From the NCBI GenBank assembly GCA_977017575.1, contig CDRNVI010000040.1:1-64000 (forward strand): a stretch of 64,000 nt of DNA, in the 5' to 3' direction. Shown piece by piece: positions 1,651-44,758 of the stretch. Numbering within the stretch: the stretch's first letter is position 1; every line of letters starts with the position of its first letter. The notes below the pieces were generated by a model, which was not told where the DNA came from, made no database searches, and saw only the letters and a program-made list of their open reading frames with translations. The stretch comes from Paramoeba atlantica (taxonomy: Eukaryota > Protista > Discosea). A program made the position numbers and the translations under genes.

Positions 1651-1901
1651 GTCGACCAACAAGTTCGCACATTAGAAAAGCTCTTAAAAGTTCTTATTAT
1701 TATTCACAACGATTATCCGTGTTTAGAATGCCTGCGAGATTTAGGATAATACGAACGATCTTTGGGAGAAGGCTCAGAAAAAAAAAAAAAAAATTTAGGA
1801 TGATTGATATAATGGCCCTTGGGGGCACATAATATTTATATTATGAGATATGATTTGTTTGTTTTGTTTCTGTAGCTTTTCTAGTAGTAAAAAAAAAAAA
1901 A

Positions 1902-2750
1902 GTGTGCAAGGTTGGTGAGGCAAGCGCATCTATAGAAGTGACGGAGGCCGTGGCTAACCAGCGCGCGCACAAAGAGTTGTTGAAAGACAAGGACCTCTCA
2001 CCACTTGTGCAAGTCTGCAGCGAAAAGGGCAATAATGATTGGCTCCAAGCGAAGTCAAGATACATCCCATCCCCACAGTTCACGTTGATGATCATGGCTC
2101 GTCTAGGGTTGGCTCACAGCGAGATGCCCAATACAATACTGTGCCCCTGATGCAAAATGATACTCGAAGCGAAAAATGCGTTACCACACTTCCTGGGATG
2201 TGTGAAATGTTTCGGCTCAAATGCTACTACACGGCACAATGCCTTAGTTCGACACATATACGATCTGTGCCTGAAAGCTGGTCTCCCGTGCGAGCGAGAG
2301 CCTCGGCAGTTCTCGACATTTCGTTGTGTGAAGTGTGCAGAAACGGTGGCTGATGGCCAAAAACTACATCATCAGAGGAAATGTGGCACACATTCGTTTC
2401 ACCGCAGTGGACCTGACTTAGTCGTGTTCTGGGCGACAGGCGAAGTTTATTACGATCTCACAGTAGTCAACGAACTTGCGAAATCACACTTGGGAAAAAA
2501 AGCGAGTCACCTATTACAAGAGGCTCAAAAAAAGAAAGTCGCAACATATGTGGACTCCAATTTAATTCCGCGCGAGCAATTCGTATGCCTACCGCTTTTG
2601 ACAGGTGGTGCCATGAACAAGAGCACTATAAATTTCCTCCATAGCCTCGCGGATGCAAACGGATTCGAACGCCGTCATATTCTTGAGGACTTCAAGTTGC
2701 TTCTTCAGAATTGAACGGAGCTCTCCTGGCTTCGCAACTGCGAAAGACAA
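1902..2750 (+). pseudogene. 5'-truncated CRE family I fragment (RLE domain)
   Basis: CP*C (TGA in place of Gly at 2148), RHNALV, CEREPR, RSGPDL, YYDLTV; 1-nt deletion near 2706 (the shifted frame gives QELNGALLASQLRK, as in homologues). Confidence 0.8.
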
Positions 2751-2809
2751 TGCAATAAAACAGGTCATCTCATATTACAAGATGTTATTATTACAAGATT
2801 TTATCATTA

Positions 2810-3134
2810 CTAAGATCACTATCGGATTACATATCCCAGGGTGCGCTCAGTGTTCGGGGCAGAACGCTACCGTGAAGCACAATCGTCTCGTCAAATACCT
2901 CTTTGACCTAAGTCAAAAGTCAGGGATACCTTGCGAACGTGAACCTAGGGCCTTCAGTTCCTGGAAGTGCGCCACATGTAAAGTGGCTATGAATCCGGAA
3001 AACAGGGGAATTCATGAGAAGACATGCTCAGGGCGGCAGTTGTTCAGGTCAGGCCCTGACCTCGTGATTTATTGGTCAACAGGCGAACTGTTTTACGACC
3101 TTACAGTGATTCACGAGCTTGCGCCGTCGAACAT
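2810..3134 (+). pseudogene. CRE family I RLE fragment, left half; interrupted by YR element V1 and continued at 7980
   Basis: HIPGCAQCSG..KHNRLV..CEREPR..RSGPDL..YDLTVIHELAPSNI; joins in frame to 7980 onward (ISKTCANLAKEAIKRKH). Confidence 0.8.
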
Positions 3135-3304
3135 TAAAAGTTTACGAAAAGAATTGTACAATGGAAATTTTGATTTCTGAGAATTATATTTACGTTAGTT
3201 GGCCGACGGGCATTGTACGTTTGTTATTCATAAACTAGTTTATATAGTGACACAAAGCATTATACAGTGAACTGGTAATAGAGCGCGTTTTTATCCTTTG
3301 AAAC
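3135..3304 (+). repeat. Split direct repeat A1 of V1 (170 bp)
   Basis: Matches 7519-7688 (TAAAAGTTTACG...CCTTTGAAAC). Confidence 0.9.
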
Positions 3305-3333
3305 GATAAAGATACAGTTTCTGTACCTTGTTG
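3302..3333 (+). other. Spliced-leader exon relic (AACGATAAAGATACAGTTTCTGTACCTTGTTG)
   Basis: Contains the kinetoplastid SL core GATACAGTTTCTGTAC and ends in TTG; no GT intron follows; gag ATG is 30 nt downstream. Confidence 0.85.
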
Positions 3334-3362
3334 TTGTTTTTGAAACTTTATCTTATCCTTTG

Positions 3363-4430
3363 ATGCCTCCGTCGCCGCGTAGCTCCATAGAGGCACGGAG
3401 AAGCGTGTCCCGTGAACCTTCAGTGGTACCAGACAACCCCATGAGTAGAGAAGAGTTGGCCGTGGTGAAGACGAGAGTTTGTGAGCAACTGCTTCTTTCC
3501 CGCGATCAGAATCCTTCGTTGCACATTAAGGCGGCATGGAATCGGAAGAACGCGGCGACTTCGGCGAAACAAATATCCCACGGGAAAGTACGTCGAGTCG
3601 GGATGGAAATGTGGGCGGTATGGGAAGAGGAGCCAGATCGAGAGTATCCATTTCCCCACAAAGAGTTAAATTACTATCGCATTGATCTAGAAGACGGACT
3701 GGGACACTCGAGCGAAGGACAAGAGTGTGCGTTGGAAGGCGGACGGCCCCTGCCTATTAACGTGCAGCCCTTTGGATCTGTAGCGACCTACAAGATTGAT
3801 CCGTATGAACCTGTGACTTGGCCGGGGCATATAGATCAACGCAACGACGACGGCTTTCGAATTAAGGACCTTTTTCGAGAATTAAAGGAAGCTCCCGAGT
3901 ATGGTTTGAGATTGAATCAATATTATCAGGACAAATCATTTCAGATGCAACAGGAGCGGAATTTCGATCAGTTGCTGGGAAAGTGGATATTGTTGGCACG
4001 CCAAACTCCCGGCTGGAATGAAGGTCCGTTTTTGGAGTTGGGGAAAGCGATAATCCAAAGTCTACGTGATGCTTACTGGCGTGCTTGCAAGGTAGACGTG
4101 GAGGCGGTTCACCGAAAAATGGACAAAGATGATCGGGCGCACGACAAATTCTATCAGCATGTAACAGATCAGTTGAGTGAGCGTGAAAAGCAACGTAGTC
4201 GGTACACTTCTTTCTCTGCGCTACGACGAACAGGGACATATTTCGGAGGAGGATCAACAGGTCAATATTCACAATCGTTTCGCCCCTCGTACGGAACTTA
4301 TCGCGCGCAATGTTACAATTGCAGATCACCAGACCATTTGATTAAAGATTGCCCATACAAACGCACATCACCGCCGGATTTTCGTCAGCGGACGGCTGGC
4401 AACGCCCCCCAGGGCGGAAAGTCGTTATGA
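3363..4430 (+). CDS. Gag-like protein of V1
   Basis: CCHC knuckle CYNCRSPDHLIKDC near the C-terminus; YDPVTW-type motif (YEPVTWP) shared with V2 gag. Confidence 0.8.
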   Translation: MPPSPRSSIEARRSVSREPSVVPDNPMSREELAVVKTRVCEQLLLSRDQNPSLHIKAAWNRKNAATSAKQISHGKVRRVGMEMWAVWEEEPDREYPFPHKELNYYRIDLEDGLGHSSEGQECALEGGRPLPINVQPFGSVATYKIDPYEPVTWPGHIDQRNDDGFRIKDLFRELKEAPEYGLRLNQYYQDKSFQMQQERNFDQLLGKWILLARQTPGWNEGPFLELGKAIIQSLRDAYWRACKVDVEAVHRKMDKDDRAHDKFYQHVTDQLSEREKQRSRYTSFSALRRTGTYFGGGSTGQYSQSFRPSYGTYRAQCYNCRSPDHLIKDCPYKRTSPPDFRQRTAGNAPQGGKSL

Positions 4431-5594
4431 AACGCCCGTCCATTAATCGCCAGTGTTCCTCGAGTCACATACACGCGTATAGATCCAGGAACGAACATCT
4501 CGCATACAATACCCGCCAAACGCGGCAGAAGCAAAGCAGTCAAATACAAGAGGATACATCCAGGGGATCAAGGGGAGAGTGTAGCGAAGAGAACGCGAGT
4601 GATACAAGGGGGTGTAAAAAATGTGAAAGACTCGAATGGAAGATCAATTGCTTGTGGAAATTTGTACCAGGGAACATTGAGCCTGGAATGCAGGAGTGTG
4701 GCTCGGAAAAATCTTTTGAGTCTGTTGATGGGGGTAAGCAGGATTACTCCCGAGGTACGCGTGGCATTGGACGCGATGTCCGGAATGTGGAGCTCGTCGA
4801 CGTGTGAGACACGAGCAAGGTTGTGGGAAAGGTTCCTGGTATATTGCACCGGGAATCATATAAGACAGACACCCCTTCACGCAGTGACGTTCGTGCAACT
4901 TCTGCCAGTGTCAATACAAACCAAGGTGTCCTACGGAAGGGCGCTAATGACCTTATTCAACCTGATCGGATTAAATACTGTCCCAATAAAATTCTTTTGC
5001 AAAGCTCTTCAGGCACAAGGAGCAGAGGAGCCAGTACATCAAATGCAGCCGTTGACACCATTCCTACTGAACAAGATACGAAGAAGGTGCACCCAATCCG
5101 AAAGTCAAACATTGCTGATGTGCTGGAAGGCAGCATCCCGTTGGTCCGAAACCGCCAATTTGACCAAGGACAAATTCGTGGAAATATCACCGCAAAAGGT
5201 TGTAATTGCTTGGGGAAGGGGGACAAAGGCTACAAGGTGCAACCCGTGGCGCGAATCGATGTACACAGTCATCCAGGGCCAGGGCACAATCGAATTGGCT
5301 CAATACGTAAGTACGCTCAGGTCATGGGATCGAATGTGCCGGACAAATGTGAGAGAGATGGACAGGAATATAAAGAGGGTTCTGGGAGAGGGTTTCGGCA
5401 CACATTCCGCCAAGAGAGGAGCGGTAACGCAATTATTCCAGGAAGTTGTCAAGGGGACAGTGGGAATCGAAGATGTGAAAAAATTAGCGAAGCACCAGCA
5501 GATCGAGTCCCTGTTGCGTTACAATTCAAACCCAGTTACCACCGCGCTAGCTCTAGGAACGGGGAAGGCGACAGCCAAACTGAGGACGCTTTAG
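4431..5594 (+). CDS. Tyrosine recombinase of V1 (frame open from directly after the gag TGA; true start uncertain)
   Basis: CWKAASRWSE (R), GTHSAKRGA (HxxR), KH...LLRY (H, Y) catalytic motifs. Confidence 0.85.
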   Translation, partial: NARPLIASVPRVTYTRIDPGTNISHTIPAKRGRSKAVKYKRIHPGDQGESVAKRTRVIQGGVKNVKDSNGRSIACGNLYQGTLSLECRSVARKNLLSLLMGVSRITPEVRVALDAMSGMWSSSTCETRARLWERFLVYCTGNHIRQTPLHAVTFVQLLPVSIQTKVSYGRALMTLFNLIGLNTVPIKFFCKALQAQGAEEPVHQMQPLTPFLLNKIRRRCTQSESQTLLMCWKAASRWSETANLTKDKFVEISPQKVVIAWGRGTKATRCNPWRESMYTVIQGQGTIELAQYVSTLRSWDRMCRTNVREMDRNIKRVLGEGFGTHSAKRGAVTQLFQEVVKGTVGIEDVKKLAKHQQIESLLRYNSNPVTTALALGTGKATAKLRTL

Positions 5595-5596
5595 CA

Positions 5597-7243
5597 ATGA
5601 AGGAGTTATTTCGAGAATATTTGCGGGACATGCCGCAGGAAAAGCATCGATACACGATTGTACGTACCAGACGTACGACAAAATTGGCCACGGAGGAAGA
5701 TTTAAAGCTACCACTGCACGTAAAGAAAATTCCCAAAATGGATGTCAATGAAATTGAGAACATGATGAATGGAAGTACAAGAAACCGGTTTAGAGAAACG
5801 TTGAATACTTTGTTGGATCGGAGGAAGAAACCCGATAGTGAGCCAAAGGTAAATCCACGATTGAACATGGAAGATATTAGTCATTTGCTAGACGCACGTA
5901 TTGTTTCGCGTGTTTCCCCTGAGGAGGAGAACAAAAGACCATCCAATCAATGGGTGATACCGTTCACAGTAGTTGAGCCTGCGGACGATAAAGGGGAAAC
6001 GGAGAGGCGGCGCTTCATAGCCTGGACGAAGGAGGATAATGAGCGAATTAAGAACGAGTACATGCCGCACGTCCCGTTAAAACACGCGGCTTATTATCTC
6101 CATCGAGCGCAGGAAGCTTTTGGTGTGAAGCGTGACCTGACATGTGGATTTTATCAAGTACCGATTCCGGTAGCAAGTAGAACAAAATTTCGATTTCGCG
6201 CAGTAAACGGTGAGTTGTTTGAACTTAATGTGATGCCAATGGGGCACCGGTGCGCCCCGGAACTGATGCACACCATTACATCCACAATCGCAGGAGATCC
6301 GGAGTATTGCAGAGCCGAGACGGCGTATACAGAACAGTTTAAGGTCGATGTATATGTGGATGGATTGAGAAGTGCAGGTTCACTAGACCAAGTTCAGCAG
6401 TATACGGAATTTGTGGAAACTCGCGCGGAGAAAGTTAACGCCACGTTTAAGGATAAAGAAAAGGAGCCCATGAAGCAGTATGTTTTTAATGGCGTGGAAT
6501 ACAGCCATACCGAAGGTAAGGTAAGAATGGGACCGAGGATCGTGAAAAAGATGCAAGGCGATACTTTTCGGAATGCAACGTACGGAAAACTAGAATCAGC
6601 TGTGGGTAGATTAGTCCATGCATCAGCAGTACTGGGAGAACCCGTTGCCAATTACCACTTCACCTTAAAATTAGTGCGGCGCCGTATAAATGCGTTAAAC
6701 AATGATCCGACATTATTGGATGTGAAGGTTCATCTTCCCCCCAATGTAACCATGGACTTGACGCGATGGAAGAAAAAGTTGATTTCAAACATATTCGTGG
6801 CGCCGCCGCCTCATCCCGACACTGTACCACATAGCCACGTTTTGTATACGGACGCTTCGTCAAAAGGTTGGGGAGGAATAATATATTTGGACCACGGTTC
6901 CGTGATATGTGTGGGAGGTCGCTGGGAAGATGATTTCGATTATGAAGTCAATCGAGCGGAGACGAGGGCCGTTCGTCTCGCGTTCGAGAAATTGTCGCAC
7001 CATTTTCAACGAGGTACCTGCGTAGACCTATTTATTGATAATACATCATGCTTAGCTTCCATATGCAAAAAATCGACCAAATCGGATGGAATAAATATCG
7101 AATTGATAGGTTTACTTAAGTTTTTAAAGAGACAGGGTATAATAGTACAGCCGCATTACATTCCGTCAAAACTGAACCCTGCGGATCCAATAAGCCGAGG
7201 AGGATGGGATTGCGACAATGTGGCGAAAGGGGTGAAAGATTGA
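5597..7243 (+). CDS. RT-RNase H of V1 (frame also open upstream to 4823, overlapping YR)
   Basis: KRDLTCGFYQ, PMGHRCAP, YVDG; RNase H motifs LYTDAS.GWG, NRAE..AV, IDNTSC, NPADPISR. Confidence 0.85.
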   Translation: MKELFREYLRDMPQEKHRYTIVRTRRTTKLATEEDLKLPLHVKKIPKMDVNEIENMMNGSTRNRFRETLNTLLDRRKKPDSEPKVNPRLNMEDISHLLDARIVSRVSPEEENKRPSNQWVIPFTVVEPADDKGETERRRFIAWTKEDNERIKNEYMPHVPLKHAAYYLHRAQEAFGVKRDLTCGFYQVPIPVASRTKFRFRAVNGELFELNVMPMGHRCAPELMHTITSTIAGDPEYCRAETAYTEQFKVDVYVDGLRSAGSLDQVQQYTEFVETRAEKVNATFKDKEKEPMKQYVFNGVEYSHTEGKVRMGPRIVKKMQGDTFRNATYGKLESAVGRLVHASAVLGEPVANYHFTLKLVRRRINALNNDPTLLDVKVHLPPNVTMDLTRWKKKLISNIFVAPPPHPDTVPHSHVLYTDASSKGWGGIIYLDHGSVICVGGRWEDDFDYEVNRAETRAVRLAFEKLSHHFQRGTCVDLFIDNTSCLASICKKSTKSDGINIELIGLLKFLKRQGIIVQPHYIPSKLNPADPISRGGWDCDNVAKGVKD

Positions 7244-7258
7244 CTGGCGAAAGGGTGG

Positions 7259-7979
7259 TCCCCGCGTGGACACCCGTTCGAGAAAGGGAGGGAAGGGAGT
7301 TCTCTCCAGGAAAAAGTTCATGAGGTATATAAAATAGATTTGATACTTACTTCGCGAAGTTGATATTACAGTACTGGTGAAGATAATGTCTTTTACTCTG
7401 TTGTCCATGATGGATGTTATATTTCGGTAGCTCTGTAGTTCTACAGATTAAACATTACAGTTTACATACGCTTACTATATCTGATTGACTATATGTTTTT
7501 CTTCCGGAAGTGCAATTCTAAAAGTTTACGAAAAGAATTGTACAATGGAAATTTTGATTTCTGAGAATTATATTTACGTTAGTTGGCCGACGGGCATTGT
7601 ACGTTTGTTATTCATAAACTAGTTTATATAGTGACACAAAGCATTATACAGTGAACTGGTAATAGAGCGCGTTTTTATCCTTTGAAACTTTTTGCCCCAC
7701 CCACCAACCCCCAAACCACTCCCCGCGTGGACACCCGTTCGAGAAAGGGAGGGAAGGGAGTTCTCTCCAGGAAAAAGTTCATGAGGTATATAAAATAGAT
7801 TTGATACTTACTTCGCGAAGTTGATATTACAGTACTGGTGAAGATAATGTCTTTTACTCTGTTGTCCATGATGGATGTTATATTTCGGTAGCTCTGTAGT
7901 TCTACAGATTAAACATTACAGTTTACATACGCTTACTATATCTGATTGACTATATGTTTTTCTTCCGGAAGTGCAATTC
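7259..7979 (+). repeat. B1-A2-spacer-B2 block of V1
   Basis: 260-bp B repeated at 7259 and 7720; A2 lies between them, followed by a C-rich spacer (CCCCACCCACC...). Confidence 0.9.
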
Positions 7980-8177
7980 TAGTAAGACATGCGCGAACCT
8001 GGCAAAAGAAGCAATAAAACGGAAGCATCAAACATACGTAGAATCAGGAAAGATCCCTGACGTAGCTTTCCAATGCTTGCCGGTTTTTTCTTGCGGATCC
8101 TTGCATCAGAACACCCGATTCCTCATCCATGCTTTGGCGGACGCTGCGTGCCTTGATCGCCACAGAACAGAGAAAAA
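7980..8177 (+). pseudogene. CRE family I RLE fragment, right half (continuation of 2810-3134)
   Basis: SKTCANLAKEAIKRKHQTYV..FQCLPVFSCGSLH..LIHALADA matches CRE C-termini. Confidence 0.75.
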
Positions 8178-8209
8178 AACGATAAAGATACAGTTTCTGT
8201 ACCTTGTTG
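8178..8209 (+). other. Spliced-leader exon relic at the 5' end of CRE-A
   Basis: Same 32-mer as 3302; followed by a 41-nt UTR and ATG at 8251. Confidence 0.85.
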
Positions 8210-8250
8210 AATTGTTGTAAGATCAACCTTTTTATTAAGATCTTTTTGTG

Positions 8251-8402
8251 ATGGGCATGTTCACTCGGAGCCGAGCGAAAGATACTGGAGTAGCTCCAGT
8301 TGTCCAGCCTCTGCCAACGACCCGCCGCAGGAAGAAACCTACGGAGGAACGGCCTCGGCCGGCACCGTCTGAATCGCGAGCAACTGGACCGCCGCCGCTT
8401 GA
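8251..8402 (+). pseudogene. CRE-A ORF piece 1 (MGMFTRSRAK...GPPPL)
   Basis: ATG follows the SL relic; cut by the LINE1 insertion. Confidence 0.7.
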
Positions 8403-9354
8403 CCTTTCCTTATTGTAAGACCTTTCCTTATTGTAAGACCTTTCCTTATTGTAAGACCTTTCCTTATTGTAAGACCTTTCCTTATTGTAAGACCTTTCCT
8501 TATTGTAAGACCTTTCCTTATTGTAAGACCTTTCCTTATTGTAAGACCTTTCCTTATTGTAAGACCTTTCCTTATTGTAAGACCTTTCCTTATTGTAAGA
8601 CCTTTCCTTATTGTAAGACCTTTCCTTATTGTAAGACCCTTCCTTATTGTAAGACCTTTCCTTATTGTAAGACCTTTCCTTATTGTAAGACCTTTCCTTA
8701 TTGTAAGACCTTTCCTTATTGTAAGACCTTTCCTTATTGTAAGACCTTTCCTTATTGTAAGACCTTTCCTTATTGTAAGACCTTTCCTTATTGTAAGACC
8801 TTTCCTTATTGTAAGACCTTTCCTTATTGTAAGACCTTTCCTTATTGTAAGACCTTTCCTTATTGTAAGACCTTTCCTTATTGTAAGACCTTTCCTTATT
8901 GTAAGACCTTTCCTTATTGTAAGACCTTTCCTTATTGTAAGACCTTTCCTTATTGTAAGACCTTTCCTTATTGTAAGACCTTTCCTTATTGTAAGACCTT
9001 TCCTTATTGTAAGACCTTTCCTTATTGTAAGACCTTTCCTTATTGTAAGACCTTTCCTTATTGTAAGACCTTTCCTTATTGTAAGACCTTTCCTTATTGT
9101 AAGACCTTTCCTTATTGTAAGACCTTTCCTTATTGTAAGACCTTTCCTTATTGTAAGACCTTTCCTTATTGTAAGACCTTTCCTTATTGTAAGACCTTTC
9201 CTTATTGTAAGACCTTTCCTTATTGTAAGACCTTTCCTTATTGTAAGACCTTTCCTTATTGTAAGACCTTTCCTTATTGTAAGACCTTTCCTTATTGTAA
9301 GACCTTTCCTTATTGTAAGACCTTTCCTTATTGTAAGACCTTTCCTTATTGTAA
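8401..9354 (+). repeat. 18-bp tandem array (GACCTTTCCTTATTGTAA) x53, 5' part of LINE1
   Basis: 954 bp = 53 units; one substitution visible near 8640. Confidence 0.97.
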
Positions 9355-12300
9355 TCGTTATAATAAGGCCATGGATACCTCCGGCACGGTCAATGAGAGA
9401 AAGCGGTGTTCTGACCCGGTTGCTCTTATTGGTCGGTCCAGGTTAGGTCGGGGCGTCAATTTTTGGCCATCAAAGTCAAAGGTTGGCGTAGCAAAACTCC
9501 GTGATCGTGCGGTAACCAGTATGTCCAACACGATTCGTGCGGGGTCTCGTGTCGCTGTGGTCTGGAGCTGGTCGTTTGCTCAAAGGCTAAAGATGTGGCA
9601 AGGGACTGCGAAATTTCGGGCCAAAAATGGTCTATGGCGTATTCGCTATGACTGTTGTCCTGGAGTATCGTTTCCTTTTCCCCCTATAGACCAACGAGTA
9701 GCGATCTGTGCGGGCCGCGTGGCACCCCCCCGTAAGAAGAAATGTAGGAAGCACCGTTCTGCGCGACTTCCCCGTCGGAATGGCTCCCCGGCGGTCGAGG
9801 AATCTAACCCCATTGCCACGAACAAGACGCTACATCTTGCAACTCTAAACGTCACTACCCTGAAACTAAAGGGAACTGATTATTTCTCCCTTCGCAAATC
9901 GACACGACTACGGGAAATTATGTCGTACATGGTCGAGCGAGGCCTTGCCCTCTGTTGCCTTCAGGAAACTCGTGTACAAACCGATATCATTCAAAACATT
10001 GCACATCAGACAATTCGTCATGGAAAGTTCGTATTTCATGTTTATATTCAAGGCGCTATCAAAGGTTACGGTGGACTCATGATTCTAAGCCTATTTGAGC
10101 CTGCTCTTGTGTCGCGAATCAGTGATCGGATCCAACAGGTTACTCTAGACTTACCAAAATTCCACGGTGTGCTATTCAATGTTTATGCCCCCACGGCGGT
10201 GGCAAAAGATGACGTAAAGGAGAAATTTTGCAATGATCTACGTGATGCATGGTATCTTAGTAATGCGAAAATAAAACTTGTTCTGGGGGATCTTAATGCG
10301 CCACTGACAGATAAGTGTCAGCAAATAATGCGTAAAAATAAGGCACAACATCGGCTTACCAATTTACTGTCTGAGCTTGGGGCTCGCGCGGCACATACAT
10401 CCTGCCCAAGCAGAAAGAAGTGGACTTATACTTTTCAAAATGGAACTGTAAAACAACTAGACCATATTCTTGTCAACAAACGTTTCGTCACTACCTTACA
10501 TGGCCACAGAGTTCTCCAACCCCCGGTGCCGACTCGACATCAAATAGTAACAGTAAAAACTAAGTTTCGTTGGAAAGCTTCAGTAAATGACGGTAGCTTG
10601 CGATTACCGTGGTATCAGTTAAAGGATCCACAAATATGTATGGACTTCATACGCCGTGTGAAAGAGAACTACACCGAACATGCGGAGATAGTTGGGATGA
10701 AAAGAAGACGAAATGAGCCAAACCAGAAAATGTCAACCGAAATGCCTGTGATATTTCCAAGTGATATTTTGTTGGATAAATTGGAAAAAGCAATTATCAT
10801 GGCTGCTGAATCTATACCAACGAAGGAGGAAAACATAAACATGTTTGCTTCAAACGATGAAACTACTACACAGTTGCGAATCCGTGACATTTTCCGTACG
10901 TCTCAAAGTCCGCAGAGGTTCGATTCTCTAGTAAAAGAACATAGCATCACCGTGAATGAAAATATCACTCAAGAATGCCTGTCTCTACAACAAAACTTTC
11001 AAAGATACAAACGTTCTTCTTGGAGACATGTTAAAATGATGGCTGGGCACACTTCATCACGCCTCAGACCGCCAGGAAAAACAAAAAGCGAACAATTATG
11101 TAATGTGCGATTACACTTTCAGAATACTGTGCAACTAAAGGAGGTAGACAACAAGATCAAATTTGCGGAAGCGCCAAAGTCGTTTATCCCTATATCTGAT
11201 GGACCGTTTGATCTCAATGAATTGACGACTGCTCTTAAAGATATGGCAACTGGTAAAGCACCAGGCATTGACTCGATTCCAATTGAAGCCTTACGAGTAC
11301 TGAACAGCGATCCGTTCATACAATCTATTCTTCTACATTTAATTAATATGGTTCGTGAGAGCGGAAGAGCTCCACAGACATGGAAACGAGTTATCCAAGT
11401 CCCAGTTCCGAAAAAAGGCGACTTAGGCAACATAAACAATTGGAGACCAATATGTCTAATAGTGCACGCTGCAAAACTCATGAACCGTATGATACTAAAT
11501 CGAATTCTTCCTACAGTGGATGCTCAATTAAGTGATTGTCAATACGGATTCCGACCCAATAGAGCAACAACGGGAGCACAAGCAACCCTCATTGAGTTGT
11601 GCCAGAAAGCGTCTCGTGAGAATCCTGGTGTTGCGCTAGGCTTCGTGGATTTCCGTCAGGCATTTCCTTCAGTCAGCTTTTTCTCCATTCGTGCTGCACT
11701 GGAAGCCTTTCACATCCCGCAGCATCTCAGCAGCATGATAATGTCTATGTATGAAAAAACAGAAGCAGTTGTACGATGCAAAAGCGGAGTTACTGATACG
11801 TTTCCGATCCAGTGTGGCACACTTCAAGGTGATGTTTTGGCCCCTGTCCTATTCCTCATGGTTCTGGATCGAGTCATGGCTGAAGTGTATAAGGAAAATG
11901 AGTTCGGACTTATCTTGCGAAGGGCGGGCACAAAAAGACAAGGAAAGCCTGCGCAATGTCTAAATTATTTAGCATACGCGGATGATTTAGTGCTCATATG
12001 TCCCTCTCTTACTAATTTGAATCGCGTTATGGAAAGACTGGAACAAACAGCTGCGAAAGTCAACTTACGTCTCAACATTGGTGTAAATAAAACTGCGTGG
12101 ATGGCAGTAGGTCAAGTGAATGACGCACAAGGTGACTTGATTCTAACGAATGGGGGGTTGGTGCCTCGAATCACCGAATATCGATACTTGGGGTTGAAAA
12201 TTACTAATAAGGGTGTCATTGTAAACTTTGAAGACCGAATTAACTTAGCGTGGGCTGCAACACATCGCCTACAGTCATTATGGAAATCAGGCCTCACGCT

Positions 12301-14111
12301 TGTCACAAAATTTCACTTATTCGAATCTCTGGTTTCACCTTTATTGCTGTATGGCTGTGGAAACTTTTCCCTAATAAAAAAAGACGCTGATTTAATTGAC
12401 TGTGAAGTGAACCGAATGAGAAGACTAGCGCTCGGGGTTCGTACTTGGGATGGTAAAAGAGGTACACCATGTGATGCACTATATGGGAACAGAATGCGAC
12501 TTTCTAACGCATGTCGAGTCCTCCGAGTTCAAATGCTAGGACACCTGATCCGCGGCAATAATCCCTTCAAATCGGTAATGCTATGGCGCAAAGCAACAAG
12601 AAAGAAATATCGTCCCACTCTATCAGAGGCATGTGCTGAAGACATGTAACTAGATGTCGAAGATCTCAATGTCCTAGCGGGAGATCGGGATTGGTGGGCG
12701 TCGAGAGTTAAATTTTTGCGTGAATATCTTGAATCTCACAAATCCTACATGGTTTTCGGCTCTAGATCCTGGAAGAAGGTATGCCAGGAATTAGATACTA
12801 CCACCTACAAAGTACTCGAAGGAATTGAAGAAGGCACGGACCATTCTCCTCTCTCAGCTGATTCCGAACACATATACGTAGATGGGGCTGTCAGTTCAGA
12901 AGCAGGAAAACCAGCCGCGGGTTCGGGGATAGTTATTGTTAATTCAAATGGTGTAAGAACCAGACAACACGTTTTACCACCGGAATGCACTTCACCGGAT
13001 CGGGCTGAACTTCGCTCCTTTCTTTTAGGCATTCAGGCAGCTTCGTCTTCTACGAGGAACACAGTTATACATACTGATTCTCATTATGTATGGGACTGGT
13101 ATCATAATGTTAGGGTTCGTTTTTCAATCATTGGATACGGTGGCATGCCAAATGCTGACCTACTCACGCAGATACAAGGAGCAATTAAAGAGCGTTGTAC
13201 AGGTAGTAGTCTCTACGTTATTAAAGTGCGGGCACACTGCGGGAATTCCTTCAATGAAAAAGCTGATGAAATAGCACGCAAAGCACAGAGAACAGCTGCA
13301 CGTCGTTTTTCATGCGTCATTCACACGCAAAGGGAGGGAAACAAATCTAATCACGGTCAAAAAAGGGAGCATGATCTCCAAGAGAAATCTCCACACAAAG
13401 TGAATATGAAAAAAGGGAAACTGAAAAATACAGAAGAAGGCAGCACAGTCAGGATTGCTCGTTCACTCAACCCAGGAGCTAATACCGGGGATCCAGTAAC
13501 GTTTTCTCAGTACAAGACATCACGGGGTAGACTGACGAATGCCCCCATTTTTGTGAAGAAAAGCCGCTATATGTAATCGAAATTTGCTGTGTATAACTTT
13601 GCGCATTAATCTGGAACGCTTATTTTCAGGAGTGTTATGTCCTCTTGGTACATTTATTTATCAACGCGTTAATAATATTCTGGAGCATTTATGTATATTT
13701 CATTGCTAAATATCCGTACTCATCGAAAACACTGAGTGGGATACGTAATATTGATAGTATACGGTGGTTTATTTGGCAAGCAGAGAACAAGTTGGCGCTG
13801 AGTTGCTCTTCGGGCATATGACGCGGCAATGAAGGCAAGAACTTGCGTACTGCTTAACCCTTGGTACCGCGTTGAATATCGATGGTGAAATATTGAGCTG
13901 AAAATGGCTAATTGTAAGATTGTTCTGGTTTTCTTGTGCTCGTTTGTACACGTTTTCTCCTAATTGCAAAAGAAGATAGGTCTCCTACCTCCATTCGCAT
14001 AATCCGCGGTTTGGCCTATTCGTGATGTGGATAGATGTTTCAGTGCGCTAAGGAGAGTGTACGTTGAAAGTTGCATGTGTATAGTCTTTTGTTATTATTA
14101 TTATTATTATT
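8403..14111 (+). mobile_element. LINE1: RTE-like APE-RT-RNase H non-LTR retrotransposon with 5' 18-mer array and (TTA)n tail
   Basis: CTTGA duplicated at 8398-8402 and 14112-14116; (TTA)n at ~14092-14111; single ORF. Confidence 0.85.
9371..13576 (+). pseudogene. LINE1 polyprotein (small N-terminal module, APE, RT, RNase H); one in-frame TAA at 12647-12649
   Basis: APE: ATLNV, LQETR, FNVYAPT, GDLNA, QLDHIL; RT: KAPGID, NWRPICL, QYGFRP, QGDVLAP, YADD; RNase H: YVDGA, RAEL, HTDSHY, VRAHCGNSFNEKAD, in the same frame after the stop. Confidence 0.85.
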
Positions 14112-14863
14112 CTTGAACTTTCGGCGCCGCCGCCGCCGTCACCGCAGTCGCTGCCGAGCGATCGACACAAGAAATCTCCTGAGGGTCCGTCTGCGACAAC
14201 ATTGCCGCGATCACAACTATTGCCTCCGTCGCAAAAGTCTCCGTCGCAACCGCGATCGTCTCCGACAGCACCGCAAGCGCAAACGTCGGAATCGCCAGCA
14301 CCGCCGCGATCGCCCCCGTCGCAAAGTCCTGCGAAGCGATCGCAACCGCCTCCGCAGCGGCAACCTCAACCGTCCCCGCCGCGACCGTCTACGCCACAAC
14401 CGTCCCCGTCTACGCCGCAACCATCTCCGCCGCAACCGCGACCGTTTCCGCCCCAAGCATCTTCGTCGCAAGAGCTACCGGTCCCGTTACCGCTACCGCA
14501 ACCGACAAACACACAGCACTCCGAGCGGTTGCGAGCCACCCTGCAGAAAAAGAGGGCTTTCGTTTTCCCTCCACAAAAGACTCCTTTGCCGCCACCACGG
14601 AATTCCCCATCTTCGAAATCCCCGACATCGTCGACGCCGCCACCCTCATCAGAATCTTGCATTTCACCTGGATCGCAATCTCCGTCGCATCCTCTGAACG
14701 AACGGAACGAAGGACGAGCTGAGGAACGGAAAGAAGCGAAAGATAAAAAAGCCATTGAAGCATCGAAACAAACCAATTCACACATTCGCATTCGTCGACC
14801 GACCGGCTCTCGATTCACGTTTCCTACAGCTAGCACCGTGATTCAGACCATGAAACCAATTGC
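14112..14863 (+). pseudogene. CRE-A ORF piece 2 (Pro/Ser-rich)
   Basis: In frame with pieces 1 and 3 once the insertions are removed. Confidence 0.7.
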
Positions 14864-17800
14864 TAATAGTTCACGTTTTGAAATTTAGCCGAGGGGCGGC
14901 TATATATTTGCCTGCTGGCCCTTCGGGGCACATAATTTTCTCAAATTATGATGTAGTATTCTCTAATTGCATGGAGGGGGGTGTTTACTCGTTTGTTATA
15001 TTCTTGTTAGGTTGTTATTTTGTTACGTTTAAAGTTTTGTGCCCACCCACCGAGCCCCCAGCCATTTGGCCGAGGGTTCCCCCTACGATCCGGTTACTTG
15101 GCAACCGTGGATCGACACGGATGATTTGTTCAAGCCACGTGAACTCATCCGTGAGCTGCGCGAAGCTCCGCAGCTTGGGGTACGCTTCAACCCTCCGCCG
15201 CAGCGTGAGCGCCTGTTCAAGATGTTAACTGAATGGGTGTACGCTGCGTGCAATACGGAGGGATGACTAGAGAAGCACAACCTCGCCGTAGCCCTTCTCA
15301 TCATCGAAGAGCTTCGCAACCATTATTGGGCTGCGGCGGGCGTTGCTGTCGAGCTTGTGCAACAGCGGTTGCACCGTGACGACGACCCTCAGGACCGCTA
15401 CGGTCAGCTTGTGGTTGACGAGCAACTGAGGGGCCGGACTGCGCAGCGTGCTCCTCGTCGACGCAGCCAAGGACCTTTCTGTTTTGGCTGTCATCAGCCA
15501 GGCCACCTCCGATCGAACTGCCCCCAAGCGTCCCAACAGCAGGGGGGGCAGTTCCGTACCACACGCACCCCGCAACAGGATTTTCGCGGCGGGGTGGTGG
15601 GCGGCGCCAACCGTTACGGCGCAACACGGGCTTTCCACTAGGAAATGCCCCCCACCCCAATTACTGCTCGTGCCCGTCGTCTCAGGCGACGACGGGTGGA
15701 TATTCTTACCCCCGTTTCCTCCCCGTCTCTCCGCCAGCGCGAAAGACGGCCACGCGTGCGTGGCACTACTCCTCCTCCCCGCCCTCTCTCCCCGTTACGT
15801 CTAAGGCGCAGAAGCGTCTCCCTCCCAATCCGTCCTCTACCCCGGCTTCCCGTTCCCGTTTACACCGCCGCCAAGACCGCCGCCGCCAAAACCGCTGCCG
15901 TCGTAACCGCCGACGCCGCGCAGCCTCCAGGAGGACGCCGCCAGGAGCTGCTGAGGGCGATTCTTCGAATGCCCCCCGAGGACCCGCGCGCCACTCAATT
16001 GGGCGAGGCGCTCAGACCCATGTGGGCAACGGCCACGTGGGCCACAAGGGAGCGACTGTGGTTCCGCCTGCGCGAGTATTGCCAGGCGAAGGGAATCACC
16101 GCGAATCCTGCAAACGCGGTGCTCTTCCTGGAGACTCTGCCTCTCGCTACCTCGACGCGCATGGGGTACGCAGGGGCATTGAGGACTCTGTTCGAGCTCA
16201 TGGGAATCGAAGGTACCCCATTGAGTCTCTACGTAAAGTCCCTGCAAGCGCAGGGGGGGCTAGAACCCACGCGGCAGATGCTACCAATCACGCCACTTCT
16301 TCTAAAGAAGCTGAGACGTCATCTCGACGTAAAGGAGAGCATGTGTTGCCTCCTGTGTTGGAAAGCCGCTGCGAGATGGACCGAGACCGCCGACCTGAGG
16401 CGGGAGCAGTTCGTGAGTGTGGCCAGTCACGAGGTAATCATTTATTGGGGCAGGGGGACCAAGACAACCCGTCTGAATCCTTACCGGCCGTACCTCTACG
16501 CGATAGTGACTGGATCGGGGACACCCGAACTGGCTCAGTTTGTGGGAAGTTTGAGACCAGGCCAGCGCCTGTGTTACACGACGGTCCGGGAGATGGACCA
16601 CAGGATGAATCAACTTCTCGGTCCGGGGTATGGAACACATTCCATAAAAAGAGGTGCAATTACTTACCTATTCGACGAGATCTCCCTCGGGAATCTCAGG
16701 ATGGAGGACGTCCAGAACCTCACGAAACACCTCAACGTCGAATCACTGTTGCGCTACAACGCAAGCAGTATTACAACGGCAAGGGCTCTCGGGACGCAGA
16801 GAGTCTCAGCACGTCTCCCAGTGCTGTAACCTCGGAGCACGTGGCAAAGTGCTTCGAGGAAGTGCCTTACCTTCGCAGGCACTCCGTTGTTTGTGCACGC
16901 CGCTCTTCACGGCTAGCCAAGGCACACGACGCTCACCTACCTTTGCACGTTAAGAAGTCGATACCTGTTATCCATTTGGATCAGGTTAAGGAGTGGATGA
17001 GTCTGTCAGCTGCCACTCGTTTTCGCAAGGTAGTGGATGAATTATTATGGGTACCTAAAGCCCCGTACCCCGAACCTAGTGTGAAAGGTTCATTGCCTGA
17101 GGCGGACGTCCGATTGTTGGAGGACGCAGGCATAATCTCCAAGGTCCCGGCGCAGGAGTTGAGAAAGCGCCCATCGATGCAGTTCATGATTCCCTTCACG
17201 GTTGTGGAGACCGATGATGAGGGCAATCAGCGCAGAAGATTTATTTCATGGACAAGGGACGATAACGATAGATTAAAATCATATGAACCAAAGGTCCCAT
17301 TATATCATCCCTCCAAGTATCTTCATAAGGCGCACGAGCCGATGGCTGTGAAGCGGGACTTCACGTGTGGATTTTACCAGATTGGTATCCCAAAGAGGGC
17401 GCGGCCCAAATTCCGCCTTAGAACGACCAGTGGAGACGTGTTTGAGATGAACGTCCTCCCGATGGGCCATAGGTGTGCACCGGAGGTTATGCACACGGTT
17501 ACCGCCGCGATTGCTGGCGAGGCGTCTATTTGTTCTCAGCGCTACTCGTTTCACCGAGGCGCTATCGACGTTTATGTTGACGGAGTTCGGTTTGCAGGAA
17601 CCCACTCCGAGGCCACCACGTACGCTCAGTTCATTGACGAGCGTTGCGACAAGGCGAACGGTCTTTTTAAAGATCGGGGTCAGCCCCCTGTAGCACAGTA
17701 CGTGTTCAATGGGGTGGCGTTCGACCATAACGCGCATACGGTCTGCCTGGGACCGCGAGTGATCAGGAAACTGCGAGCCGACTCTTTCTTCAATATTTCC

Positions 17801-17978: not shown

Positions 17979-20900
17979 ACACACACACACACACAACACT
18001 GAAGGCATTACCCTTCAGTTGAGAAACTGTTCAAGCTTCACTAAATATATGCTCCTAAAACTAGAACTAATAGAATTTGATTCCCACACCATCGTGCGCC
18101 CTATTGGTAGATATATTTTTCCATTACTTTCGTTTTGAGTACACCCCTGAGTTTACAGGTTGGATATTCGGAAATGTTTCTTTTCGCTTTGTTCAAATTC
18201 TGCGTTAGCAAGCGAAGACGCGGTGTCTAGTAACTTACCTTTTCTCTTACGCCGCATCCGACGCTCCTCACGGGTTGGGTTCGTGGTTTTCTTTTCTATT
18301 GTTTTAAGGCACGCTATCCACTCATATTCGGAGTGGGCCGATTCATTTCCTCGGTTCAGGTTTTTTCTTCGTTTAGAAATAGGTTCCGAACTAACGAGCT
18401 TTTTACTTAAGGTATCCGCTTCTTCATTCCATTTATTCCCTGAATGGCCTCGGACCTTAATAAAGGTGATGGTTCTCCCCTGACAATGCGCTGATCGAAT
18501 AAAACTATCCAGAAAACTAAGCAGATCGGAATTCGAGCCTTCAAAACCAACCAGTCGATCTTTCCTTCGGCGCATATTTACAAAATTCCACACATAATAC
18601 GAATCTGTGTGTACAACAACATTTTCAACTTCTTTTAGTTTACTCAAACCAAATAGGGCAGCGTGAATTTCGGCTCTTTCAGGAGATTTGGTTTCCAGGT
18701 AGGATAGGGAGGACGAAAAACTTTCATGCTTCTCTGCGTTTACTATTACACATCCAACTGCTACCTTTACCCTTGTGTCCGTATCATCGGAGATAGAAGC
18801 ATCCACGTACGCATGCATTTCCTCTGGTTTTACAGGAAAAGGGGTTTCCCCTTCTTCGATAAATTCTAATTTATTACACACTGTTTCTTTTAAAGCGTTT
18901 TTGTATGCTAGTTTCCATTTAGGACTTTTGTAGCCAATATAAGACTCTGAGGGCTCGAGTCTCTCTGAGAGGTTTTCAATTAATTTGGCCCAGTGTGCGC
19001 GATCAGAGGCATATACAAGCATTTCTTCCATCTCAATCCCAAGGTCTTGTGCGCATGCTTCGGAAGGCGATGGAAATCTCGCCTTTTCCCGGGAGCCCCA
19101 TCCTACTAAAGAGCGGTAGATCTCAGAGTGCCTAATTTGGTGACCCACAAGGCGCGCCCGATTAATACGATGTATTGTATTGAAATGTAGCGTGTTGTGG
19201 CACAGAGATTCAATAGGATAACAATGCCCATTCTCATCAACTCCTACGGCGTCACACACGATGCGCCTCATGTTGTTTACCTGTACTTCAACGTTTCTCA
19301 CCTGCGATGCCGATATCACCATGGATGACGTACCGTAGTTTAGTATGGGATAGACAAGGGTGTCAAAAATTCGAAGCTTAGCCTTTACGCGAAGAGGCGA
19401 GATCCAAATACCTCGTAGTTTGCTAAAACACGCCCACGTCAAACGTAATCTGTCGGTTAATGTTAATTTAGGCTCGGTTTCATGCTGAACATGCCCCAGA
19501 TGGCGGTACGATTTTACTTTCGGAATGTTCCCACAAGTTGATGAAAGGAGATCGCCATCCTTATTCTCATTCTTCGAGATGGACATCCATGCCGTTTTGT
19601 TGACACCAGCGGCTATACTCAAATTAGCTTTGGATGCTTCAGTAGCGACGCTGTCGACCATCCTTTCTAATGAACGTTTGGAGTCGGAAAACAGGATCAA
19701 ATCATCAGCGTAATCAATATCAGTCACTCGTGTTGATTTATATCCACGTTTTCTGGTTCCGGCGGAGCTCAGCGTTAGTCCATCATCTTTATTTTTCAAT
19801 GCCGCGTGAAGGATGCGATAGAGAACCATGATAAATAAATACGGAGCCAGCACATCCCCTTGCAAAATACCCGAGGTAATAGGAAAGGAGCTGGTTTTCC
19901 CAAACGGGGTACGTACAATGGCCTCTAAGCCCTCGTAGGCCGACATTGCAAGGGTTGTCATTCGAGGTCCTACGTGGAACGAATGTAACGCTGCCCTGAT
20001 AGATGAGTGTGAAAGCGATGGAAAGGCACTCGCGAAGTCGATGAAAGCAATCATGACATTTTCGTGACTTCGATTCCGTCTTGATTTCGTGAGGATTTCA
20101 TTGAGAATAATTTGGGCTCCACAGGTGGACCTCTCCGGGCGGAAACCATATTGATTTTCGCGTAGAACTCGCTCGGTCGAGGGCCGAATACGATTCAAAA
20201 TCATACCGTTAATTAGCTTGAGGATAACGTTGACAAGACATATTGGGCGCCAATTCCGCAGCTCGGAAAGATCACCTTTTTTTCGGTACGGGGACTTGCA
20301 GAACGGTTTTCCAGAGATGGTGCGTCTTTCCCGTTTCAAGGGCTTTGTTGATGATTCCAAGAAGGAGATGGCGTAAAGAATTTTCTTCGAGTATGGATAT
20401 GTACGCTTCCGCTGGTATCTCGTCGAGTCCTGGAGCTTTTCCTCGTTTAAGTCTACGCGCAGCGCATGCAAGTTCATCTTCTGTGAAAGGTGAATCCATG
20501 ATTTCTCCATCAAAGTTTTTGGCCTCATCAAATTCAACTTTTGTGTCTCCAACACCTCGGTTAGCAATTTTAGAGAAGAAGTCCTTAACGGCTGCTAGTC
20601 GTTTCCGGTTTGATTGACCTGCGCCATAATTAAAAACTGTTTTCCTCATTCCGCATATTTCGCGAATGAATCTCCAAGGGCTGGAATGGTTTTTCCGTAG
20701 TTTTTCTTGGAGAATTGCACATTCAGCTTCAATTGTTTCCTCAATTTGCTCACGACTCTTGTCTACAAGACCTTTGAATGTATGCGCATTTCGACTAGAT
20801 TTGTACAGGGCGCTGAGTGATAATATTTCCTCTTGTTTGTTTGTTTCTTCTCGTTGCCCATTGGATTTACTTAAGTCACTTGGTGCCTCGAAATCCGGAA

Positions 20901-21906
20901 GTGTTTTCTGTGCCGCATATAGTATCCCCTCTGATAAAACCTCCCACGGGTCGGGTCTTCCCTCTCCGATTACTTTGAAAACAGCTTGTTGGGTACATTT
21001 ATTGAATTCCTTGCAAATATTTTCTGATTTTAGGTTGTACCATGGCAAATAATTGCCAGGTTGTGTTTCATTCGCTTTCCACTTAATCTTGAGACGGGTG
21101 ACAACCGAGCAGTGCTGCGTTGGGAAAGGAGCAAGTAAAACTTTATGATGTTGTATTGCTGACGCGTATCGATTGGAAATTATAATATGATCTAATTGTC
21201 TCTCAGCGCCATTGGGAAGTTTACAAGTCCACTTTCGAGAGCTTGGTGAGAGAGTGTGGGCAGACTTGCAACCAACGTCTACAAGTAAGGCGCGAAATCG
21301 TGCTACAGCTGCTTTGTCTTCAGCAGTTTTGTTGACCAGCGTTAAAGGGGAATTAAAATCTCCAATTAAGATCGTAGGTCGTTGGGGGTTCGTGGATTCA
21401 AGATCGCGAACGGCCTTTCTTAAAGAAGCGTCGAAGGTAGATTTCATTTCCTTAGAAGAATCCCTAATGGGACCGTACACATTGAATAGTGTAGCGTTCC
21501 CGTTTTCTCAAGGAAACTGTGCAGTCATAATCCGTTCTGAGATAACCCGCACCTTTTCCAATGGAAAAGTACTAACGAGCGCCATTCCGTTGTAAGAACG
21601 GTCGGACGTTGCTGAGGAAAAATATAAGTAATACGTAACGCCGGTGTCCTCCGTTTGCTCACGTAGAATCTCACCAAAGAGACGAGAATCAAAACGGAAC
21701 CTCGTTTCCTGCAACCCCAGTATGTGAATCCTCTTGCTACTCATAAGGTTCAATATTTCCTTCAATCGGACACACGATCGAATAGAAAACAAATCCCCCC
21801 CCTCTAATTTTAATGAGGTCACATTCAGGGTCGCTATCGACAACTTCTCCTTCACAGCCGAACCATTTTGGTTCTCCAAAGCGCGATCGACATGCTCGCC
21901 GGGCGA
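17979..21906 (-). mobile_element. LINE3: 5'-truncated RTE-like APE-RT-RNase H element with (TG)n tail
   Basis: Minus-strand ORFs 21508-21879, 20272-21480 and 18153-20567 give APE, RT (QGDVLAP, YADD) and RNase H with frame breaks (one at an A7 run near 20280); (CA)n at 17978-17994 on the plus strand. Confidence 0.85.
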
Positions 21907-44744: not shown

Positions 44745-44758
44745 TACGTTGGTACAAA

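Follow-up and report, generated by a model that had tools for sequence, protein, structure and literature searches.

Long interspersed nuclear elements (LINEs) that have no promoter need another means of defining the 5′ end of their RNA, and ribozymes of the hepatitis delta virus (HDV) type are a known answer in R2 and in the trypanosome element L1Tc. HDV-like ribozymes process the 5′ ends of co-transcribed R2 (PMC3774820) and of L1Tc and its trypanosomatid relatives (PMC3185411, PMC4035085). In R2, the cleavage site lies wherever about 7 nt can pair with P1′, the 3′ strand of helix P1, at a distance of 23 to more than 700 nt (PMC3774820). The present analysis concerns two LINEs, called LINE1 and LINE2, in a 64,000-nt stretch of DNA (the window; positions 1 to 64,000 of contig CDRNVI010000040.1, assembly GCA_977017575.1, deposited as Paramoeba atlantica). 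Each of them begins with a long array of 18-bp units. It appears from sequence comparisons that these arrays are probably tandem P1 strands and cleavage sites of an HDV-like ribozyme that would set the 5′ end of the LINE RNA.

The predicted ribozyme has the same topology as those of R2 and L1Tc, namely helices P1 to P4 and P1.1, a cytosine in the joining segment J4/2, and a UCC in loop L3 facing a GG after P1′. It occupies the same place, from the extreme 5′ end into the start of the open reading frame (ORF), and would do the same job of releasing the element from a co-transcript. Long and variable J1/2 linkers, as found here, are normal in R2 (PMC3774820), and L1Tc represents the same solution in another euglenozoan (PMC3185411, PMC4035085). 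The clade of LINE1 and LINE2 appears to reuse this known fold with a difference, in that the P1 5′ strand and its predicted cleavage site are repeated tens to hundreds of times. In addition, L3 holds a hairpin and the first base of the unit (G1) pairs with C. A model proposed by Eickbush for R2 holds that duplicated P1 copies upstream compete as cut sites and lengthen J1/2 (PMC3774820). The R2 duplicate is 28S target sequence that arises once at integration, whereas here an 18-nt segment of the element itself recurs, with counts reaching 235 or exceeding 419, in at least six lineages. In L1Tc, the initial 77 nt occur unrepeated and double as a promoter. No specific report of short tandem repeats at LINE 5′ ends came up in literature searches, nor did a description of a repeated P1 strand.

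Head arrays and the LINE clade that carries them

The LINE1 array was found to consist of 53.0 copies with 99% matches (Tandem Repeats Finder (TRF), period 18, score 1901); 52 units are identical and one carries a T>C change at 8635. As the initial annotation of this DNA had described, the array forms the 5′ end of the element and stops 16 nt before the ATG at 9371. Neither unit nor spacer contains an ATG on the sense strand. The LINE2 array measures 235.2 copies by TRF, its only imperfections being two 1-nt deletions in T-runs. The two units are different, yet they have the period of 18 and a (T/G)TAAGACC motif in common, as had also been noticed. The LINE1 and LINE2 proteins are 38% identical over ~1080 residues, and no nucleotide similarity between the two LINEs was found.

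The array had further been placed between the left target duplication and the ORF. This is clear for LINE2, whose duplication is 13 bp long. The 5-bp duplication of LINE1, CTTGA, is plausible but weak, and it is plausible because deleting LINE1 (8403-14116) rejoins a continuous host ORF of ~310 codons. The LINE1 ORF matches Exo_endo_phos and RVT_1 of Pfam, with RNase H lying beyond an in-frame TAA (12647-12649). Given this single stop between reverse transcriptase (RT) and RNase H, the copy in the window is probably inactive. In a second LINE1 copy (locus L006), one called product (P0020, 986 aa) spans RVT_1 and RNase_H, which suggests that the frame is open there across the site of the TAA.

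How widespread are such arrays? Protein searches found close LINE copies only in European Nucleotide Archive assembly ERZ24900291, and relatives with 25-41% identity in other metagenomes. In six lineages of one LINE clade, arrays of period 18-19 stand 0-16 nt before the ATG, and in a seventh lineage (L007) one unit remains at the edge of a contig; the seven were drawn from five different samples. The clade is of the endonuclease-RT-RNase H type: its LINEs have a single ORF, end in a defined 3′ tail and are flanked by 5-13-bp target duplications. The first ATG past the array is in every case the start of the long ORF. Three more distant LINEs that do not have the N-terminal domain of the clade (L010-L012) showed no such array. 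The tails are family-specific simple repeats with no poly(A), namely (ATT)n, (TTG)n, (TAG)n, (TGG)n and (TAGG)n (window, L007, L008 and L009), and other LINE families of the window end in poly(A).

The number of units varied widely. LINE1 has 53 in the window and 70.2 in L006. LINE2 copies are mutually 99% identical and have between 0.6 and 235 units: 235 in the window, 2.1 in L003, about 1.0 in L004 (a copy with its own 11-bp target duplication), 0.8 in L002 (intact 1433-aa ORF) and 0.7 in L001. LINE3 has 8.6 units (L001), the L009 family at least 5.9, and LINE5 at least 419 with a period of 19 (L013). L008 and L014 carry an identical unit in two samples. The contigs from other samples are short-read assemblies and break within arrays. 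Thus, the expectation that the array is a family trait holds at the level of the clade. It does not extend to every copy, as three LINE2 copies with full-length bodies, 99% identical, have one unit at most, and one of them has an intact ORF. In other words, the architecture characterizes the clade, but unit number varies extremely and individual copies can do without an array.

The array lies within the target duplication and is the 5′ end of the element itself; the LINE did not invade a satellite. Many LINEs target simple repeats, and one array in L001 has no LINE ORF attached, as would be expected if the LINE inserted site-specifically into a pre-existing host satellite. Target duplications enclose the array in the window copy of LINE2 and in L004, which rules out a host satellite as the insertion target. 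Moreover, the repeat stops at the element with no continuation beyond its 3′ end, and, the L001 array aside, each unit sequence was restricted to the 5′ end of its own family in the 64-kb window and 15 fetched loci. The probability left to a host satellite is close to nil.

The L001 array in question lies on the minus strand (7232-7353) and consists of 6.8 LINE3-type units followed by A8; a 3-unit array is also present in L001 at 1502-1557. In the window, one LINE3-type unit with no LINE3 body stands right before a poly(A) (28578-28611), just downstream of an RT-encoding ORF (26275-28491). These bodiless units might be 3′ transductions or fragments.

In L013, the array (1-7999) fills all 8 kb of flank that was fetched, with 94% matches, and multi-unit variant blocks are repeated 5-17 times. 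In L006, variants are shared by adjacent units. From these patterns, the LINE head in L013 appears to have expanded into a satellite with higher-order structure, and amplification of units in place is directly visible in both loci. The L013 array with its variant blocks resembles a young satellite seeded by the untranslated region (UTR) of a transposable element (PMC9659126). The retroelement satellites tabulated in that review come from a 3′ UTR, an ORF or a long terminal repeat, and none comes from a LINE 5′ leader.

Translation of the array as a hexapeptide repeat was considered and rejected. The frame is open in LINE1 and LINE2, but an in-frame TAA precedes the ATG in L008 and L009, and the period of 19 in L013 also excludes it. 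Arrays of eight units folded neither better nor worse than arrays of shuffled units, with no consistent RNA structure of their own.

The predicted HDV-like fold

The phase of the unit was set independently by the right edge of the array, which places the unit start at the G after TTAA. In this phase, the first 5-7 nt of the unit are complementary in all seven lineages to ORF bases just before a conserved G(G/A)G. This partner site lies ~100 nt downstream in LINE1, LINE2, LINE3 and LINE5 and 140-310 nt downstream in L007-L009. The P1 pairs are GACCAC/GUGGUC, GACCU/AGGUC, GACAAC/GUUGUC, GUUGAU/GUCAAC, GGUUC/GAACC, GCCGU/GCGGC and GGAAAA/UUUUCC. Matched families form a mean of 5.9 contiguous pairs, compared to 1.7 in mismatched ones, and in a permutation test only one of 5040 assignments, the true one, reached the observed sum. 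In other words, the P1 sequences differ completely among lineages and match within each lineage. Because the entire array of each family bears the P1 version matching its own P1′, arrays must have been regenerated repeatedly from a functional unit.

This covariation bears on what the operative part of the unit is. The initial annotation had emphasized a pyrimidine tract followed by TAAG, which is probably not the operative feature, since the G of TAAG|ACC opens the covarying helix P1. Likewise, the GACC common to the LINE1 and LINE2 units would be explained by the GGUC that both have in P1′.

Further evidence for the fold comes from the helices located within the ORF. P2 is fully paired (5/5) in six lineages, with compensatory forms CGGAG/CUCCG, CGGAU/AUCCG, CGGAC/GUCCG and CGAGC/GCUCG. 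P3 is fully paired (3/3) in all lineages, GCC/GGU being replaced by GCG/CGU in LINE3 and LINE5. In P1.1, the UCC of L3 faces GG after P1′ in five lineages, and a compensatory UUC faces GA in LINE3 and L009. P4 is a 13-bp hairpin that is fully paired in LINE1 and LINE2 despite different sequences. J4/2 resembles the GGCGAA of HDV: its sequence is G-C-(G/A)-A-A/U-A in six lineages and, in LINE2, GACAAAA, with the candidate catalytic cytosine 4-5 nt before the 3′ strand of P2. P1, P1.1, P2, P3 and P4 occur in canonical order at homologous positions in the seven lineages and are predicted to form a nested double pseudoknot. The predicted core occupies approximately the first 45 ORF codons in LINE1, LINE2, LINE3 and LINE5 and lies deeper in L007-L009. 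In LINE1, J1/2 is 30 nt long: it runs from the remainder of the last unit (9342-9354) through the spacer to the first base of the start codon.

In an independent RNAalifold prediction, P2, P3, an L3 stem and P4 were found as well, with compensatory changes in 19 of 30 pairs. With the P1.1 pseudoknot included, 87.1% of cells pair in the fold, compared to 69.4% in shuffles (0/500) and 37-50% after a shift of the partners by 1-3 columns. Pairs in which both bases changed numbered 20, compared to 10.5 in shuffles.

Several points weigh against this fold or its activity. In all seven lineages, L3 carries an inserted hairpin of 43-58 nt (minimum free energy z-scores -2.4 to -6.5), and the 3′ strand of P3 still adjoins P1′ despite the insert. 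To our knowledge, such an insert is not known from described HDV-like ribozymes. G+1 is present in the seven lineages but pairs with C, unlike the G.U wobble of HDV itself. A search of the LINE2 head (44690-45000) gave no HDV-like Rfam match at the E-value threshold, and the window and loci L001-L008 gave no Rfam match at the gathering threshold. Curated covariance models are ill suited to pseudoknots and long inserts. The core is also coding sequence, so that its conservation is partly driven by the protein; the compensatory changes and the pairing to a non-coding unit are not. Site-specific self-cleavage 5′ of G+1, which would leave a 5′-OH, is a prediction for which the evidence is indirect, namely the leaderless 5′ ends of the clade and two to four insertion 5′ ends at G1 or a few nt from it. 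The sample is small (7 lineages and 9 junctions).

The 5′ ends of insertions give a mixed picture. Counted in the G1 phase, the LINE1 array has exactly 53.0 units. In L004, LINE2 begins with one unit at (GA)CCAC, and two further LINE2 copies begin 3 and 5-6 nt later. If unit starts are the predicted cleavage sites, they would explain both the exact register of LINE1 and why some LINE2 copies have one unit or fall a few bases short of it. Against this, only ~2-4 of nine insertion 5′ ends lie at the predicted cleavage phase and the rest begin inside a unit. The nine junctions show no overall clustering in phase, and only the three short LINE2 copies and LINE1 fit.

Spliced leader, possible promoter and predicted cleavage at the unit start

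Other retroelements of the same DNA have 5′ ends of a different kind. A 32-nt spliced-leader relic, AACGATAAAGATACAGTTTCTGTACCTTGTTG, heads six copies of other retroelement families in the window and in ERZ24900291 loci (Table 1). Upstream of each relic is unrelated DNA or a poly(A) tail, and the downstream sequence differs from copy to copy, with an ATG 25-60 nt past the relic in five of the six. The relic apparently does not include the first ~4 nt of the leader, and the copy at ~62733 is further truncated at its 5′ end. Its core, CAGTTTCTGTAC, is diagnostic of the 39-nt spliced leader found in kinetoplastids and diplonemids, and the 20 papers listed, out of 55 in which this string occurs, are all on trypanosomatids. 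A leader consensus that we take to be that of Diplonema begins with AACCAACGAT, which resembles the start of the relic. This consensus appears in a table of Euglenozoa leaders (PMC3795323). A dinoflagellate spliced leader was searched for and was absent. Leader relics of the kinetoplastid/diplonemid type at the heads of these retroelements identify the host organism as a euglenozoan. They also show that the other families retrotranspose from leader-capped, trans-spliced mRNAs. Euglenozoans transcribe their genes polycistronically with universal trans-splicing (PMC10161547).

The LINE clade behaves differently, as the relic was found at none of its nine 5′ junctions. Relics of the host leader were rejected as the source of the units, each family's unit being different and unrelated to the 32-nt relic. 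Dinoflagellate retrogenes carry relic spliced-leader arrays, that is, short tandem 5′ units in a trans-splicing host. Those arrays are truncated copies of a leader that is the same for all genes, whereas the units here are specific to each family and unrelated to the leader.

The presence of a spliced leader raises the possibility that the units are tandem trans-splice acceptor modules, each a U-rich tract followed by AAG, that would give a capped mRNA anywhere in a polycistron and would exist in many copies since every splicing event discards the signal 5′ of the chosen AG. All nine unit types are T-rich, end in AAG and contain no ATG, and eight of the nine have exactly one AG (L009 has two). 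In T. brucei, acceptors are set by the pyrimidine tract before the AG, several AGs are often used, and a poly(U) tract shorter than 9 nt leads to poor splicing (PMC9639853). Moreover, an unrelated retroelement in the window has two ~18-nt head-like modules ending in TAAG|AT between its leader relic and its ATG (8210-8250). This is the element that LINE1 interrupted; its ORF starts at ATG 8251 and resumes at 14117. The acceptor reading does not predict the absence of leader relics from all nine clade junctions while six copies of other families have one. Covariation with the ORF site explains the G of AAG and the bases following it, and acceptors need not covary. The L009 unit is only 33% pyrimidine. 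On balance, acceptor modules are an unlikely account of the arrays and their repetition, and both roles could also coexist, with spliced RNA serving translation and cleaved RNA serving transposition.

Likewise, the units could be promoter or initiator monomers, miniature counterparts of mouse L1 monomers or of the Pr77 of L1Tc, with transcription starting within the array. Each unit contains a TATA-like T(A/T)TTAA motif, and the next unit start but one lies 26-30 bp past this motif, a spacing consistent with where the short LINE2 copies begin. The promoters of mouse L1 are tandem monomers in variable number (PMC10620060), and the first 77 nt of L1Tc combine an internal promoter with an HDV-like ribozyme (PMC3383444). 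New mouse L1 copies are often truncated within their tandem 5′ end (PMC10620060), a further likeness to the arrays; those monomers are ~200-bp DNA promoters, whereas the clade units are 18-19 nt long and tied to an RNA helix. However, protein-coding genes of euglenozoans generally have no individual promoters (PMC10161547), the covariation of unit starts with the ORF site would go unexplained, and 5′ ends would be expected to spread evenly along long arrays. A promoter role therefore seems highly improbable.

The reading that appears best suited to these observations is that the array repeats in tandem the 18 nt with which the element's RNA begins. In a nested double-pseudoknot ribozyme of the HDV type, this segment would supply the 5′ strand of P1 and the beginning of the J1/2 linker, and the remainder of the ribozyme (P2, P3, L3, P1′, P1.1, P4 and the catalytic C of J4/2) would be encoded in the ORF. 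Since the host makes long polycistrons and caps them by spliced-leader trans-splicing, an inserted LINE would be transcribed by read-through of a host polycistron. A cut just 5′ of the unit-opening G (UUAA|G) would release the LINE RNA from upstream sequence and give it a defined 5′ end with no spliced leader, as in R2 and L1Tc. Every unit would be a possible cutting site, because every unit bears the same P1 strand. A cut at the last unit would yield RNAs and new copies with about one unit, and a cut or stall farther upstream would yield copies with more. Units may be gained or lost in place through slippage or unequal exchange, and arrays may expand into satellites of at least 8 kb. Self-cleavage, the choice of the unit that is cut and a benefit of many units are what we infer from these patterns.

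Cleavage at the unit start would account for several features of the clade. The spliced leader would be missing from its 5′ ends because the ribozyme cuts there, and the predicted cut site UUAA|G would explain the invariant G and the A/U-rich bases before it. The layout of the ribozyme would explain why the array ends just before the ATG and why the ATG falls within J1/2. The absence of upstream ATGs would likewise be accounted for.

Why would the P1 strand be repeated? A single P1 strand suffices for an HDV-like ribozyme, so that any benefit of having more is conjectural and the arrays may be neutral. One possibility is that the ribozyme is real and the repeats are a by-product of slippage, by RT or during replication, on the 5′-terminal 18 nt, with no advantage. 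It would fit the spread of 0.6 to 235 units among 99%-identical copies, the amplification in place seen in L013 and L006, and the three full-length LINE2 copies that have one unit at most. On the other hand, arrays are present in six lineages whose proteins are only ~32-53% identical to that of LINE2, each lineage has its own unit at nearly equal period and at the same place relative to the ATG, and so persistent a by-product requires a clade-specific mechanism. In addition, copies short by 3-6 nt have lost P1, a damage that spare units would cover. A neutral minisatellite is a minority possibility, not a negligible one.

Alternatively, and rather tentatively, the array may be an evolved magazine of substrate strands. 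Most cycles of retrotransposition would collapse it to about one unit, by cleavage at the last P1, and slippage during reverse transcription or replication would regrow it; passage through this bottleneck would keep the family's P1′ match by concerted evolution, and occasional arrays would become satellites. Within the cleavage reading as a whole, we suggest that spare units ensure the survival of a usable P1 strand when reverse transcription ends a few bases early, as in the truncated copies of L002 and L001, and that they keep unpredictable flanking sequence away from the ribozyme core. If the magazine reading is true, this would be the first case of a mobile element that bears, as a selected and heritable trait, a self-cleaving ribozyme with a tandemly repeated cleavage site.

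Confirmation of the cleavage reading would show how a ribozyme-dependent element might handle 5′ truncation and unpredictable flanks. It would also make the clade a clean natural source of covariation data on a large HDV-like variant whose L3 carries an insert, explain the leaderless 5′ ends of the clade next to leader-bearing neighbours, and document a route from a ribozyme strand to satellite DNA.

Feature coordinates, the N-terminal domain and other elements

The positions of the features discussed above are given in Table 1.

Table 1. Coordinates of LINE1, LINE2, their predicted ribozyme parts and the spliced-leader relics (window positions unless a locus is named).
Feature	Position	Strand	Basis or remark
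Left CTTGA, probable 5-bp target duplication of LINE1	8398-8402	.	extends over the array's first two bases
LINE1 head array, 53.0 units of GACCTTTCCTTATTGTAA, each opening with P1 5′ strand GACCU at a predicted cleavage site UUAA|G	8401-9354	+	TRF, unit count, P1 complementarity
P1 5′ strand GACCU, last LINE1 unit	9337-9341	+	partner AGGUC 9445-9449
16-nt spacer before LINE1 start codon	9355-9370	+	part of J1/2
LINE1 ORF: Tudor-like N-terminal domain, AP endonuclease, RT	9371-12649	+	Pfam, ORF list, alignment
LINE1 predicted ribozyme-like core, codons 1-44	9372-9501	+	parse, statistics, RNAalifold, pseudoknot pair counts
LINE1 core: P2 5′ strand	9372-9376		
LINE1 core: P3 5′ strand	9377-9379		
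LINE1 core: L3 UCC	9380-9382		
LINE1 core: inserted hairpin	9383-9440		
LINE1 core: P3 3′ strand	9441-9443		
LINE1 core: P1 3′ strand	9445-9449		
LINE1 core: P1.1 GG	9450-9451		
LINE1 core: P4 hairpin	within 9452-9487		
LINE1 core: J4/2	9488-9496		
LINE1 core: P2 3′ strand	9497-9501		
LINE1 ORF continuation, same frame, RNase H	12650-13576	+	Pfam RNase_H, E 2e-16
LINE1 3′ UTR with (ATT)n tail (~14092-14111)	13577-14111	+	end set by alignment to L006
Right CTTGA, probable target duplication of LINE1	14112-14116	.	sequence match, host ORF restored
Left target duplication of LINE2, 13 bp, GGGTACACTGACC	40497-40509	.	sequence
Extra 3 nt CAT before LINE2 array	40510-40512		
LINE2 head array, 235 units of TTAAGACCACTTTTTGTA, each with P1 5′ strand GACCAC	40513-44744	+	TRF, purity, P1
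P1 5′ strand of last LINE2 unit	44727-44732		
LINE2 intact ORF, 1433 aa: endonuclease, RT, RNase H	44759-49060	+	ORF list, Pfam
LINE2 predicted ribozyme-like core	44763-44883	+	parse, statistics, RNAalifold, pseudoknot pair counts
LINE2 core: P2 5′ strand	44763-44767		
LINE2 core: P3 5′ strand	44768-44770		
LINE2 core: L3 UCC	44771-44773		
LINE2 core: inserted hairpin	44774-44822		
LINE2 core: P3 3′ strand	44823-44825		
LINE2 core: P1 3′ strand	44826-44831		
LINE2 core: P1.1 GG	44832-44833		
LINE2 core: 13-bp P4 hairpin	within 44834-44869		
LINE2 core: J4/2	44870-44878		
LINE2 core: P2 3′ strand	44879-44883		
LINE2 3′ UTR: perfect hairpin CTGATACATATGTATCAG, (TTG)n-type tail, no poly(A)	49061-49495	+	
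Right target duplication of LINE2, 13 bp, GGGTACACTGACC	49496-49508	.	sequence
Leader relic	3302-3333		
Leader relic	8178-8209		
Leader relic	52145-52176		
Leader relic	~62733-62757		
Leader relic, L003	16937-16968		
Leader relic, L004	~11228	minus	

The palindromic hairpin of the LINE2 3′ UTR is perfect, 18 nt long, and stands directly before the tail (49455-49495).

The N-terminal ~130 aa of the LINE1 and LINE2 proteins (9371-9790 and 44759-45178) form a conserved, clade-specific domain with the pattern RVAVVW...LW.G.V...YD...PFPP. A profile of this domain matched only 59 clusters among 1.84 billion representative proteins. The best matches of its AlphaFold2 model (predicted local distance difference test score 79) among PDB folds were the Tudor-like repeats of Spindlin (probability 0.94-1.0, E 0.03-0.1). 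The model suggests that the domain may guide insertion by way of chromatin. A role in binding the repeat was rejected, as the fold search pointed to a Tudor-like chromatin reader and not to an RNA binder. The first ~40 codons of the domain coincide with the ribozyme-like core. For annotators, it would follow that the first ~45 ORF codons (deeper in L007-L009) are under constraint from both RNA structure and protein.

The window consists almost wholly of nested retroelements, with at least nine ORFs that have RT matches, seven of them on the plus strand. A fourth member of the clade on the minus strand (18384-21858) is 34-40% identical to LINE2; the match starts at about LINE2 residue 146, and the head is missing, through either truncation or interruption. 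A further short fragment of the clade lies at 59099-60127, also on the minus strand. At 28832-28975, a pair of 18-bp units (CCTTTATTAAGACCTTCA) precedes ~85 nt that contain no long ORF, and a 25-nt poly(A) closes the segment, possibly a short non-autonomous retroposon headed in the same way. Finally, a 419-bp tandem repeat is present in 3.5 copies with 99% matches at 57608-59083. It has segments in common with 14859-15080, 24595-25230 and 29698-29875 and is part of another repeated element.

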